A DNA stretch of 64,000 nt, from the IMG/VR virus record IMGVR_UViG_3300046808_001241, positions 1 to 64,000 of that record; one strand, 5' to 3'. The notes beneath the pieces are model-generated. The model had not been told where the DNA came from. It did no database searches and saw only the letters and a list, made by a program, of their open reading frames with translations. The position numbers and the translations under genes were made by a program. Below are positions 19,622 to 27,047 of the stretch, one piece after another (the first letter of the stretch is position 1; every line of letters begins with the position of its first letter).

Positions 19622-19891
19622 ATGAATAAACCGAAGATTAGTTTAGGCGGAAAGAACAACCATGGACGCATGAGTGGCGCACGTTCGAGTCGTGCATCTT
19701 CGACCATTTTCAAAAAATTGCAAAAGTTGGATAGAGAAATTTCTTTTCTTAAAGCTCGTTGTAATTTGTCAAATTATTATATTTTAGGAAAAGCATTTAT
19801 AAAAAAGACAGAAGAAAGAATAGAAAAACTTGACTTGAAGAGAAAACAAGTTAGACTTGAAAGAAAGAAATATAAAAATGAAAACAAATAA
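19622..19891 (+). CDS. basic hypothetical protein
   Basis: packed ORF. Confidence 0.55.
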   Translation: MNKPKISLGGKNNHGRMSGARSSRASSTIFKKLQKLDREISFLKARCNLSNYYILGKAFIKKTEERIEKLDLKRKQVRLERKKYKNENK

Positions 19892-23724: not shown

Positions 23725-24336
23725 ATGAAAAAACCAATAACATTTAAACAAGCTGGTATGATCGTAATCGTTCTGCATGTAGCTGGATTTATTGGTTTTA
23801 CTCAATATGCAAGTTATAGAGCAGCCATAGCTAAACAATTGAGAGAGTCTAAAAAGACGGAACTGTTGTCAGAAATTCGTTCACAACAAGATTGGAATAA
23901 CGTCAACATAAAGCCTAGAATTGTTGCAGTAGCGACTCCCAAAAAACCCTCTTCTCCTAGTAATAAGGAAAACCAAAAAGGGGACATGCTACGAACCGTA
24001 CAAAATTTTGCAGTACAAACAACTGACAAAATCAAACAAGAGCTGAAGGAGGTTAACGTCTCTTCAACAAACCAGCAGCAACCAGCTAGAACAAAACCGG
24101 TCACCTCTACTGTTTGGAAGGTAGAAGTAAAACAACCGTCTCCGACACCATCAATAGTTGCTTCGAAGCAACAAGCCCAAAAAAGAAAAATAGATATAGC
24201 CTCGATTAAACAAAATGTAAATAAACTTAAATCTGAAATACAAACCATCAAAACGGTCAGTTTCAGCAACGGACTTGTTACGCAAACTACGGAAGAAATT
24301 CAACAAAGGATGTCTTCTCACATAGTGCTGAGATAA
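23725..24336 (+). CDS. membrane-anchored low-complexity protein
   Basis: N-terminal TM; K/Q/P/S/T-rich. Confidence 0.7.
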   Translation: MKKPITFKQAGMIVIVLHVAGFIGFTQYASYRAAIAKQLRESKKTELLSEIRSQQDWNNVNIKPRIVAVATPKKPSSPSNKENQKGDMLRTVQNFAVQTTDKIKQELKEVNVSSTNQQQPARTKPVTSTVWKVEVKQPSPTPSIVASKQQAQKRKIDIASIKQNVNKLKSEIQTIKTVSFSNGLVTQTTEEIQQRMSSHIVLR

Positions 24337-24344
24337 TTATACTT

Positions 24345-24590
24345 GGGCTAAGCATGAAAACGAGCCGCGACCCGCTGATAAAGGGTGCTTAGTCCTAAGA
24401 CGTCGCGGGTAAACGTCTCATTTGCCAGACCCGATTAGGCAGGGAGTGATAAGTAACCTTCGTCCAGCGTGTTAAAAACACGGTAGCCAATGAAGAGCTT
24501 TCTGGTATAATTACATTTGATCTCTGCCAAAGGCAGGAATCCTACAGAGGCTTGACCGCTGAGCCAGCAATGCGAATTAGCGGTAACGAT
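24345..24590 (+). ncRNA. candidate structured RNA with 5' nested pseudoknot, unassigned
   Basis: GGCTAAGCA/TGCTTAGTC, CCGCGA/TCGCGG and CCC/GGG pairings plus downstream helices; no credible ORF. Confidence 0.5.
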
Positions 24591-24602
24591 CTTTGAAATT
24601 TT

Positions 24603-25036
24603 GGGGGTGTACTGGTTTCGACACATAGTTGAACCTAAGAGTGCATGCAGAGGTTAATCGATGGCCTCTTTAAAAATCGATTAAAAACCTAAACGCAGAA
24701 GACAACACTTCTGACCTCTTAGCTGAGGCCGAATACATCTTCAACAATGCTGACGAGTTCCTCGCCGGCGTTGAAGAGTACGAACTCGCAGCCTAAGAGC
24801 CTAATAGAGGATCCTCTAAATCTATTTTGAAACGTAGAGGAAAAGATAACAGTGTAAGCTTGTAAAAAATTACCACTGAGAAATATATGATCTTCGCATA
24901 TATAGGCAGACACAAAAAGTTAGGCCGATGAGCCACGACAGCCTTTTGTCAATCAAATGTCAAATCCATCCAAGCATGTGAAGAGCTTTTAGCATAAATT
25001 ATTTGGACAGGGGTTCGAATCCCCTCACCTCCACCA
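24603..25036 (+). ncRNA. ssrA: tmRNA
   Basis: 5' GGGGGTGTACTGGTTTCGAC, 3' GGGGTTCGAATCCCCTCACCTCCACCA with G3:U; tag ORF 24695-24796 ending YELAA*. Confidence 0.95.
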
Positions 25037-25053
25037 TAAATATATTAACTAAC

Positions 25054-25141
25054 GGACAGGTGGCAGAGTGGTCGATTGCGCTGGTCTTGAAAACCAGAGG
25101 ACCGAAAGGTTCCGTGGGTTCGAATCCTACCCTGTCCGCCA
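25054..25141 (+). tRNA. tRNA-Ser(TGA)
   Basis: GGACAGG/CCTGTCC, CTTGAAA loop, long variable arm, CCA. Confidence 0.95.
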
Positions 25142-25161
25142 CTTTCTCATTGCGAACGAAA

Positions 25162-25233
25162 GGGGGTGTGGTGCTAATGGTAACACATGGCCTTTGCAAG
25201 GCTGGGTTAAGAGTTCGATTCTCTTCACCTCCA
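25162..25233 (+). tRNA. tRNA-Ala(TGC)
   Basis: GGGGGTG/CACCTCC with G3:U70 (same stem as the tmRNA), TTTGCAA loop. Confidence 0.85.
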
Positions 25234-25405
25234 CGTTCTTACTTTTTCTTTTTATTAGCTCCTTTTTGAGATGATTTAGAACCAGCTTGCTTTGGTTTTT
25301 TCTTTTCTTTACGTTGGGAGTTGTTTCCTTTTGCCATAGTAAAATTACTTATTATTTTTTGTTAATTTTCTTGAATGTCCAAACATTTCGTGTATTATAT
25401 AAAGC

Positions 25406-25672
25406 ATGCAACCGACTATTAAAGATCTACGACGGCAAGGGTACAAGGTACGAGTAATGCACACTCGGGAATATTGGATTAAAGCTAGGGTAACCGGGCA
25501 CTCAAAAGAACTGCATGCAAGAGGAGGTTCTACTAAAATTGAACTAACCACACCCGATAAACAACACACAGTTGCAGGAGAAGCAGTTTGTTCGCTTGAA
25601 GATAACTTTAATAGGAAATTAGGCAATTCAATTGCTCTTGGACGAGCTCTTACAGCGTTAGAACACAAATAA
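25406..25672 (+). CDS. phage hypothetical protein
   Basis: ARGGST...AVCSLEDNFNRKLGNSIALGRA pattern. Confidence 0.75.
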   Translation: MQPTIKDLRRQGYKVRVMHTREYWIKARVTGHSKELHARGGSTKIELTTPDKQHTVAGEAVCSLEDNFNRKLGNSIALGRALTALEHK

Positions 25673-25680
25673 TTTAAAAA

Positions 25681-25767
25681 GCTCGAGTGGCGAAATGGCG
25701 AAACGCAAAGGACTTAAAATCCTTTACATTAGAAACACTGTGGGTTCGAGTCCCACCTCGAGTACCA
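25681..25767 (+). tRNA. tRNA-Leu(TAA)
   Basis: GCTCGAG/CTCGAGT, CTTAAAA loop, variable arm, CCA. Confidence 0.95.
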
Positions 25768-25778
25768 AATTTTAAAAT

Positions 25779-25863
25779 GGGTAGTTCGTATAGCGGCAAT
25801 TACTGAAGACTGTAAATCTTCTGCCTTCGGGCTTCGCAGGTTCGAGTCCTGCACTACCCACCA
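25779..25863 (+). tRNA. tRNA-Tyr(GTA)
   Basis: GGGTAGT/ACTACCC, CTGTAAA loop, CCA. Confidence 0.95.
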
Positions 25864-25873
25864 CTTTCAAAAT

Positions 25874-26041
25874 ATGACACAAAACACAACACAAGAAAAA
25901 GTATTCCAACTCTGTCAGGAATTGGAAGAGATGAAGCAACGCAAAAAGTCGTTCGTTAGGGCTTATAACGAAGAAATCAAGCGTTTGCAAGCAGAGATTA
26001 AAGACCTTATCAATCCCGAAGAAGCAGTTGAACTTCCTTAA
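25874..26041 (+). CDS. small coiled-coil protein (55 aa, not in ORF track)
   Basis: MTQNTTQEKVFQLCQELEEMKQRKK... Confidence 0.6.
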   Translation: MTQNTTQEKVFQLCQELEEMKQRKKSFVRAYNEEIKRLQAEIKDLINPEEAVELP

Positions 26042-26093
26042 TATTCAAAAGAACCGGCTTAGTTAGTTCGATCCCAATTAAGCATATTATTAC

Positions 26094-26360
26094 ATGAAGG
26101 ATCTCATAAGAGAGTCAGCAGGAATATTAATGGCTTTGTGCTTTATGTTCTGTTATGTACCTCAAATAGTCAAAATAGCAAAAACAAAATCTTCAAAAGA
26201 CGTTTCTCTGTCTTTAATCTTTATGTGCATGGGAGGATACACATTTGGTTTGCTTTATATGTTTTTGACGAATTTTGCTTTGTGGATATTTTTAAACTAC
26301 ACTTTTGGGCTTGTCATGTCATCGGTTCTGATATATACTTGCTTTAAATATAAAAAATAG
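26094..26360 (+). CDS. PQ-loop / SemiSWEET-family transporter
   Basis: 88 aa, three TM segments, YVPQIVKIAKTKSSKDVSL signature. Confidence 0.85.
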   Translation: MKDLIRESAGILMALCFMFCYVPQIVKIAKTKSSKDVSLSLIFMCMGGYTFGLLYMFLTNFALWIFLNYTFGLVMSSVLIYTCFKYKK

Positions 26361-26435
26361 ACTTGTAGCTCAGCTAGTCAGAGCACATCATTGATAATGA
26401 TGGGGTCGTTGGTGCAAATCCAACCAGGTCTACCA
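26359..26435 (+). tRNA. tRNA-Ile(GAT)
   Basis: AGACTTG/CAGGTCT, CATCA-TTGATAA-TGATG; atypical T-loop TGCAAAT; CCA. Confidence 0.85.
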
Positions 26436-26438
26436 AAC

Positions 26439-26516
26439 GCTCCTATGGTGTAATTGGTTAACACATCTCCCTTTCACGGAGAAGACTTGCGGGTTCGAGC
26501 CCCGCTGGGAGTGCCA
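26439..26516 (+). tRNA. tRNA-Glu(TTC)
   Basis: TCTCC-CTTTCAC-GGAGA, CCA. Confidence 0.9.
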
Positions 26517-26687
26517 TAAATACTACAAATGAAGGTAGAAAAAATAACACGAATTTACTTGCCTTTCAAAGACCATTTCAAAAAACAAAAAGACGATAAA
26601 AAACAACAACGGAAGAAAAAAACCGTTGAGCAGTCCAAAGAGAAAAAAGATAGTCATTTTATTGGATGGGCATAATTAATTTTATAA

Positions 26688-26759
26688 TGCGGGTTACAAT
26701 TCTGGGAATTGGGATGTCTCATAAGCATCTTCAGGAGGGTTCGATTCCCTCACCCGCTA
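26688..26759 (+). tRNA. tRNA with CAT anticodon (Met or Ile2)
   Basis: GATGT-CTCATAA-GCATC, GAGGG-TTCGATT-CCCTC; mismatched first acceptor pair, short D arm. Confidence 0.75.
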
Positions 26760-26762
26760 TTA

Positions 26763-26837
26763 GCCGGCATAGCTCAGTGGTAGAGCAACGGTTTTGTAAA
26801 CCGTCGGTCCTCGGTTCGAATCCGAGTGTCGGCTCCA
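26763..26837 (+). tRNA. tRNA-Thr(TGT)
   Basis: canonical cloverleaf, TTTGTAA loop, CCA. Confidence 0.95.
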
Positions 26838-26843
26838 TTTTTT

Positions 26844-26918
26844 TGGCGAGTAGCTCAGTGGTAGAGCGGTCGGCTGTTAACCGATTGGTCGTAGGTTCGA
26901 ATCCTACCTCGCCAGCCA
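26844..26918 (+). tRNA. tRNA-Asn(GTT)
   Basis: TGGCGAG/CTCGCCA, CTGTTAA loop, CCA. Confidence 0.95.
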
Positions 26919-26970
26919 TTTTAAGTGGACTTGTCCACTATTTGATAGTATCTTTATTTCACAATAAAAC

Positions 26971-27047
26971 GTACCTGTAGCTCAGTTGGATAGAGCAATA
27001 GCCTTCTAAGCTATTGGTCGCTGGTTCGAGCCCAGCCAGGTACGCCA
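26971..27047 (+). tRNA. tRNA-Arg(TCT)
   Basis: GTACCTG/CAGGTAC, CTTCTAA loop, CCA. Confidence 0.95.

Follow-up and report, generated by a model that had tools for sequence, protein, structure and literature searches.

The tmRNA of Escherichia coli encodes the tag ANDENYALAA. Published tags range from 8 to 35 residues (PMC8012679), the commonest length being 10 (PMC11915505), and recognition of a terminal LAA as an ssrA degron of the ClpXP type is supported by the literature (PMC9382460). Long ssrA tags are found in Mollicutes such as Mesoplasma and Mycoplasma, where they are recognised by Lon and the length goes together with a change of protease (PMC9382460); no other precedent of this kind was found. 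tmRNAs are also encoded by about 2.3% of sequenced phages (PMC9004378), and they occur in huge phages as well (PMC7162821). It is usual to regard such phage tmRNAs as spares for a housekeeping RNA of the host.

We present a conserved, phage-borne variant of the ssrA tag, which belongs to a long-tag family of which no description was found in the literature searched. It lies in a 64-kb stretch of phage DNA (the window, by which we mean the whole stretch analysed) and comprises 33 codons as against the roughly 10 of the standard tmRNA, the difference being made up by an in-frame acidic insert of about 24 codons. Like the ssrA tags of the Mollicutes, the phage tag is much longer than that of E. 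coli. Those tags end in NYAFA and belong to hosts without ClpXP, whereas the phage tag keeps LAA, has an acidic, predicted-helical core and is phage-borne; since the NYAFA end is absent from it, we treat the likeness as an analogy only and not as membership.

Architecture and genomic setting of the tmRNA gene

The window covers the opening 64 kb of a virus record 217,182 bp long, which has 127-bp direct terminal repeats and a G+C content of 36.7%, and which encodes a T4-like replication set comprising a family B DNA polymerase, UvsX, a DnaB-like helicase, SbcC and a ligase. The polymerase is about 31-33% identical to that of any sequenced phage, the top matches being those of cyanomyophages and pelagimyophages, and the metagenomes that contain DNA of this phage come from freshwater, river and estuary. 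The source is a freshwater myovirus of 217 kb, uncultured and a distant relation of T4, and the terminal repeats and T4-like replication genes of the record bear out the phage provenance that an earlier sequence-only reading had assigned to the tmRNA. That reading had placed the gene at 24603-25036 on the plus strand, bounds that were recovered independently by ARAGORN and by Rfam/Infernal. The comparison with the Rfam tmRNA model that it had suggested as a check gave 125.7 bits against RF00023 (gathering score 47, E 1e-48) with model positions 1-374 complete, and a tmRNA search of the phage's own genome gave the same RF00023 result as the scan of the window. The features of the locus are as follows.

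24484..24511, plus strand: candidate sigma-70-like promoter, TAGCCA with a 16-nt spacer and a TG-extended TATAAT (consensus scan, 10 of 12 matches plus TG)
24588..24602, plus strand: conserved 15-nt leader GATCTTTGAAATTTT, directly 5' of the mature tmRNA
24603..25036, plus strand: complete one-piece tmRNA of 434 nt (Rfam RF00023, ARAGORN; homologues in related phage contigs)
24603..24609, plus strand: 5' strand of the acceptor stem, GGGGGUG, pairing with 25026-25032 (sequence and Rfam structure line)
24648..24682, plus strand: pseudoknot PK1, AGAGG/CCUCU and AAUCGAU/AUCGAUU (Rfam alignment)
24683..24694, plus strand: A-rich single-stranded spacer of 12 nt ending in UAAAC (gap from PK1 to the resume codon)
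24695..24796, plus strand: tag frame of 33 codons plus TAA, AEDNTSDLLAEAEYIFNNADEFLAGVEEYELAA (ARAGORN; in-frame selection; 112 loci)
24696-24713, plus strand: small 5' hairpin adjoining the extended helix-5 hairpin
24716..24799, plus strand: extended helix-5 hairpin over codons 8-33 and the stop (minimum-free-energy fold, pair covariation)
25009..25036, plus strand: T-arm, 3' strand of the acceptor stem and encoded CCA (Rfam alignment with maximal posterior probability)
25054..27047, plus strand: array of ten tRNAs, for Ser, Ala, Leu, Tyr, Ile, Glu, Met, Thr, Asn and Arg (ARAGORN, Rfam)

All the parts by which a standard tmRNA is recognised are present, namely the RF00023 score, the tRNA-like domain, PK1 followed by spacer and resume codon, and the tag frame. 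The acceptor stem pairs GGGGGUG with CACCUCC over 7 bp and contains the G3-U70 alanine identity pair; the T-arm reads AGGGG-UUCGAAU-CCCCU, and the 3' ACCA is encoded in the gene. PK1 displays compensating changes in the relative G003, where its two helices read CGUGG/CCACG and GAUCUG/CAGAUC (alignment A1). The pattern AAAA..UAAA.G is invariant across seven tmRNAs from phages whose DNA polymerases are 41-88% identical to that of the window, and the end of the window's spacer aligns with the Rfam consensus UAAuUGCa. Nucleotide identity is 0.71 in the tag region and 0.72 in PK1, and 0.48 in PK2-PK4. The gene is thus like the standard one-piece tmRNA of E. coli in its G3-U70 pair, CCA, PK1, UAAA spacer, GCA resume codon, LAA end and stop within helix 5. 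Apart from the length of the tag, it differs from that standard in having helix 5 extended around nearly the whole frame, and in being encoded by a phage, with a tRNA array behind it and no smpB in the genome. It is also unlike the two-piece, riboswitch-linked ssrA of Melnitz and pelagimyophages, where the 3' half of the acceptor precedes the 5' half and the riboswitch often found with it is one for glutamine, in that its gene order is colinear with the standard model from 1 to 374, without permutation (ARAGORN likewise classes it as a standard tmRNA), and that no riboswitch family was found in the Rfam scan of the window.

Like the tmRNAs of mycobacteriophages and huge phages, which are often found beside tRNAs, this one supplies the phage with a ribosome-rescue RNA of its own. 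It heads the ten-tRNA array on the same strand, the order of tmRNA followed by tRNAs recurs in relatives and in metagenome loci, and the two are probably one transcription and processing unit. A 203-residue ORF (23725-24336) next to the tmRNA was considered as a conserved partner and set aside, as it has no relatives in IMG/VR. Elsewhere in the window, ARAGORN reports a 'tRNA-???' with a four-base anticodon (gacg) at 19632-19706 on the plus strand; that interval matched no tRNA or other Rfam family even at E values up to 1, and probably contains either a degenerate tRNA or nothing more than a false call. Far from the main array, close to the genome's right end (G000:C1:215460-215592), there is a single tRNA-Gly (tcc), and a weak 19-bit match to the tmRNA model at that position is merely this tRNA.

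The complete 217-kb genome contains no SmpB (PF01668), by a search whose controls were positive in 10 of 10 bacterial and 0 of 4 archaeal genomes, and searches of it for ClpP, SspB and psbA were all negative. The search for pmoC (AmoC) likewise found no match in the phage, but the same search also matched 0 of 14 control genomes, which makes it uninformative. Without SmpB, ClpP and SspB of its own, the phage would depend on host factors for the action of its tmRNA.

Reading frame of the tag and the hairpin over it

The tag codons occupy 24695-24793 and are followed by a TAA stop at 24794-24796, with the resume codon GCA at 24695, 12 nt past PK1. ARAGORN gives a tag identical to the 33-codon frame first proposed. 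Resumption at the GCA after UAAAC, which the sequence-only reading had assumed, agrees with the Rfam consensus position and with the distance from PK1, and selection starts at this very codon. The peptide is acidic, as had been claimed, with a net charge of -10, and it ends in ...YELAA directly before the stop, thereby having the terminal LAA of an ssrA degron. Its description as unusually long needs some qualification: the 33 residues stand, and they place the tag at the top of the published range of lengths rather than beyond it.

Nei-Gojobori pN/pS values were computed over 24 distinct type-A tag sequences. Overall, the tag frame yields 0.29, as against 1.45 and 1.28 in the shifted frames; the value is 0.35 in codons 1-10, where the shifted frames give 1.47 and 0.95, and 0.13 in codons 11-23. 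In the same 24 tags, entropy at the third codon position is double that of the other two, all ten third positions of codons 1-10 vary, and many invariant residues are written with three or four different codons. Moreover, the frame is open from the GCA in all seven aligned tmRNAs. On the strength of the pN/pS values, the codon variety and the open frame, we conclude that the whole 33-codon frame evolves as a translated peptide. In relatives, ARAGORN places the start of the tag at tmRNA position 123-124, which results in a shorter tag of 23-25 residues beginning EAEYIF...; we reject these calls as artefacts, since the codons upstream are open in the relatives and under purifying selection. The program misses about half of the family's tmRNAs (L085-L087; L096-L208; L225-L304) and gives most of the others the truncated EAEYIF... 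tag, and automatic annotation therefore under-reports long tags.

Family tags such as AEDN-TSDLLAEAEYIFNNADEFLAGVED-YALAA amount to the nine-residue AEDNYALAA interrupted by an insert of about 24 residues. The tag of the window similarly looks like an ordinary AEDN...Y(E/A)LAA degron with an acidic stretch of about 24 residues, SDLLAEAEYIFNNADEFLAGVEE, inserted into it. AlphaFold2 prediction from the family alignment places helices at tag residues 5-17 and 19-28 (mean pLDDT 76), and hydrophobic residues recur with heptad-like spacing at positions 8, 12, 15, 19, 22/23 and 26. LAA is terminal in 47 of 55 family peptide strings, with C-termini that include YELAA, YALAA and LLAA. A few members (L088, which is G001, L134 and others) end instead in LEA, AEAA, LTA, YAA or LLA, and may be variants with a weakened ClpX signal. 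A blastp search of the tag against the phage's own ORFs gave nothing significant, and no tag-like motif was found elsewhere in its proteome; an Atlas look-alike search with the tag returned short hypothetical proteins only.

Most of the tag had also been proposed to fold into a long hairpin, and this hairpin is present in the minimum-free-energy fold: the segment 24690-24830 folds at -44.6 kcal/mol (z = -4.7), with none of 200 shuffles folding as well. Because indels upset the MAFFT alignment of the tag region, RNAalifold recovered hardly any consensus structure from it, and pairs were counted on the window's own fold instead. Over 24 sequences, 84.7% of the cells of the hairpin are paired, as against 38-44% with the partners slid by 1-3 columns, and both-sided pair changes number 14 against 5-7 in the slid controls, a comparison that is somewhat inflated because the structure was taken from the window's own sequence. 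A long hairpin forms over the tag in each relative examined, with a register that sometimes differs. Both the tag peptide and the RNA structure are constrained. The strongly synonymous character of the substitutions and the return of the peptide motif in different tag types argue for selection acting primarily on the peptide; as the hairpin covaries, part of the conservation could be structural.

Distribution of the long tags and the probable host

Relatives of the phage were found in IMG/VR, a public collection of viral contigs, by means of the DNA polymerase. A tmRNA scores above the Rfam cut-off in 6 of the 23 larger related contigs, and a seventh has a partial match at the contig end. Scanning IMG/VR with the 5'-end motif retrieved 113 stretches, among them 38 loci with type-A tags of 32-35 residues. 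Metagenomes were scanned with the type-A alignment (A3) in place of the mixed tag alignment (A2), whose diversity was too great for a scan of the collection, and 140 contigs were confirmed by tblastn. The pooled viral and metagenome type-A set comprises 112 loci with 82 distinct nucleotide versions and tags of 33-35 residues. Other long tags, of 30-35 residues, occur in large aquatic phage contigs (ANNNVDMAPSLDEADAILAKFGWAEEAAVAA, ANDDIDMEMALSVAEADEILAKFGYVEEEALQMAA, ADEANDCPAGLLAQAEAIFANPDAVLNAELAVA and GEDNIAGLLDEAAAIMNNADAVLAGAEVAEVVA), and the core [LV]xEA[ED]xI[LFM] is common to these further long-tag types. Among 50,697 phage records, no match was found to the window's tmRNA by blastn or to its tag by tblastn; for a marine long-tag relative, the same records yielded matches to the tmRNAs of Caulobacter phages that were confined to the 33-nt 3' end.

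The trait is not confined to one phage lineage. A polymerase related to that of the window is present in 1 of 11 long-tag contigs, and a complete 158-kb genome has none; furthermore, one type-A locus adjoins a different polymerase family, so that the tag is found on at least two phage backbones. Either the long tag spread between phage lineages or it is ancient. Long-tag tmRNAs of other types were observed in IMG/VR contigs of 100-200 kb (L096, L152, L133, L148, L153, L109, L166 and L129), some of which, judging by the ranges of the IMG sample numbers, may be from marine (Tara Oceans) samples. Two distant relatives keep the length of the tag and not its charge: L090 (G004, polymerase 66% identical) has a basic 35-residue tag, AKTNVKAILAKVKKAVNTITEFCLCDEMAPLAIAA, and L089 (G010, polymerase 41% identical) one of 26 residues, GNRIVNAVRGIANRVFAPQGELALAA, both having been translated by hand from the alignment.

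As regards the host, sites resembling Shine-Dalgarno sequences precede 14% of the phage's ORFs against a background of 12%, and the upstream regions are G-poor and A-rich. The corresponding values are 11% against 10% in a Cellulophaga phage, 41% against 15% in a cyanophage and 41% against 6% in a pelagiphage. The phage thus makes no use of Shine-Dalgarno sequences, as is also true of the phage of Cellulophaga, a member of the Bacteroidota, which points to a host in this phylum. Judging by these translation-initiation signals, a member of the Bacteroidota is the most likely host. The -7 motif of the Bacteroidota, TAnnTTTG, showed no enrichment upstream of the phage genes.

The tag was sought in bacterial genomes in two ways. 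EAE[YS]I[FL]NNA, a nine-residue type-A motif, occurs in no tmRNA among the 185,579 species genomes of GTDB; the lone match, in a Rikenellaceae MAG (L209), falls in an acyl-CoA-ligase-like ORF containing AEAEYILNNAD, is not a tmRNA and is attributable to chance. A profile of all the long tags matched none of 401 Bacteroidota genomes, with the phage itself, as positive control, scoring 57.9 bits. What does match in these 401 genomes is the last 30-62 nt of the tmRNA alone, at 80-94% identity, and the five phage-like Bacteroidota tmRNAs that were examined have tags of 9-10 residues, such as GNTQYAMAA. By comparison, phage homologues or a tRNA array accompany every metagenome locus of at least 5 kb: the three lacking phage homologues have tRNA arrays, and in the two of them checked with PHROGs there are genes for phage polymerase, HNH, head-fibre or tail proteins. 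As the insert was found in no bacterial genome searched, we regard it as a feature of the phage lineage and not as the copy of a host tag, although a diverged long tag in some bacterial lineage may have escaped a single nine-residue motif run on GTDB and a profile run on one phylum. The suggestion that the long tag reflects the host lineage is accordingly not upheld, and no candidate host sharing the tag, which would have pointed that way, emerged from the GTDB motif scan or the 401 Bacteroidota genomes.

Proposed fate of tagged proteins and transcription of the gene

It could be held that the extension matters as RNA only, the long helix 5 stabilising the tmRNA or tuning its loading on the ribosome, with the peptide incidental except for the terminal degron. 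The fold, far better than that of shuffled sequences (z = -4.7), the 14 two-sided pair changes against 5-7 in the slid controls and the long hairpins formed by all the relatives, if sometimes in another register, would suit such an explanation. We nevertheless think it unlikely: the synonymous excess is seen in the tag frame only, segments of which span pN/pS values of 0.13-0.47 as against about 1.3-1.45 in shifted frames; synonymous sites are near saturation (pS about 0.6), from which it follows that constraint on the RNA sequence in itself is not strong; invariant residues are encoded by three to four different codons; and the core peptide motif recurs in tag types that differ at the nucleotide level. 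Far less credible still is a true resume codon further downstream, with the tag shortened to the 23-25 residues of EAEYIF.... This is where ARAGORN begins the tag in relatives (position 123-124), but codons 1-10 are open in every relative and have a pN/pS of 0.35 against 0.95-1.47 in the shifted frames, while the GCA lies at the canonical distance from PK1, behind the invariant UAAA and at the Rfam consensus position, and is the codon chosen by ARAGORN itself for the window. The alignment of seven tmRNAs and the codon-level selection thus speak against the late start that had been named as a way for the long tag to dissolve into an ordinary one, and a tag starting there would still exceed twice the usual length.

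The content of the peptide might, alternatively, mirror the host lineage, the phage having acquired a host ssrA with the same long tag. It is true that a phage tmRNA often falls in the same group as the tmRNAs of its host lineage (PMC9004378), and the host of this phage is one that we infer indirectly. With the type-A motif in no tmRNA of 185,579 species genomes, the tag profile at 0 of 401 Bacteroidota genomes, the likeness to the Bacteroidota limited to the universal 3' end of the tmRNA (the tags examined there having 9-10 residues), the longer metagenome loci all phage-like and the tag on at least two different phage backbones, we hold this to be very unlikely. A different possibility is that the tag is not mainly degradative, and that the insert blocks or ties up host proteases, sequesters the tagged proteins or passes them to a phage factor. 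The extension of peptide selection beyond the terminal LAA, the conservation of the motif across phage lineages, the heptad-like hydrophobic pattern in the predicted helices and the loss of LAA in some members are in line with it. Most members, however, have LAA or a close variant, as is expected of a working ClpX degron, and neither a phage-encoded partner nor a similar motif was found in the phage proteome, which makes this an improbable account of the tag as a whole.

We therefore favour, as the probable explanation, a functional phage tmRNA that uses host factors and adds a 33-residue LAA tag, in which the peptide-conserved, phage-lineage insert acts as an added recognition element or spacer. 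The host synthetase would load the phage tmRNA with alanine by virtue of the G3-U70 pair, and host SmpB and EF-Tu would deliver the charged molecule to stalled ribosomes, which may include those on host mRNA cleaved during infection, as the sequence-only reading had envisaged. Translation would then resume at the GCA at 24695 and add the 33 residues, the terminal LAA most likely still routing the tagged proteins to degradation of the ClpXP type. The insert would most likely be a second recognition element, for a Lon- or FtsH-type protease or for the docking of an adaptor or phage factor, or else a spacer; in the former event the extension might alter the choice of adaptor or protease, as had also been suggested. 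More tentatively, and as less likely than not, we put forward the possibility that the acidic, predicted-helical insert is a phage-specific functional module that has spread among several aquatic phage lineages and alters what becomes of proteins that are tagged in the course of infection, for instance by way of another protease or adaptor, a phage factor or the jamming of host proteolysis. If true, these phages would have reprogrammed trans-translation rather than just carrying one more copy of a host function.

The tag is under purifying selection in more than 100 phage sequences, differs from the short tags of the probable host phylum and was found in no bacterial genome searched, which suggests that the phage gains from the content of the tag and not just from the release of ribosomes. 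It thereby offers a concrete peptide with a conserved core motif, which is directly testable for protease and adaptor specificity.

The candidate promoter lies about 92 nt upstream of the mature 5' end of the tmRNA, and is a weak candidate since its TGgTATAAT is kept in the closest relatives only. The 15-nt leader recurs in near-identical form (G[AT]TCTTTGA[AC]A[AT]TT) at almost all of the 24 distinct type-A loci, among which the surrounding genes differ. The leader motif TCTTTGAAA was considered as a genome-wide promoter and rejected, being repeated nowhere else in the phage genome; the leader at 24588-24602 may be a processing signal. Across the whole genome (G000), the 7-mers ATAAATA and TAAATAA are enriched 8-9.5-fold in the 120 nt upstream of the phage's ORFs, and resemble the T4 late promoter TATAAATA.

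Transcription of the tmRNA in nature is supported by four freshwater metatranscriptomes, in which its peak word depths are 1,471 (X10), 46 (X19), 276 (X20) and 5,342 (X21), in assembled contigs that pool relatives and lack a matched DNA control, so that DNA carry-over may contribute. The direct upstream flank (24470-24605) has a depth of 0 in three of the runs and of about 160 in X21, and further upstream (24300-24469) X10 has a depth of 33-38. Among the metatranscriptome variants listed within the tag ORF, 10 of 11 fall at third codon positions, and nine of these are synonymous.
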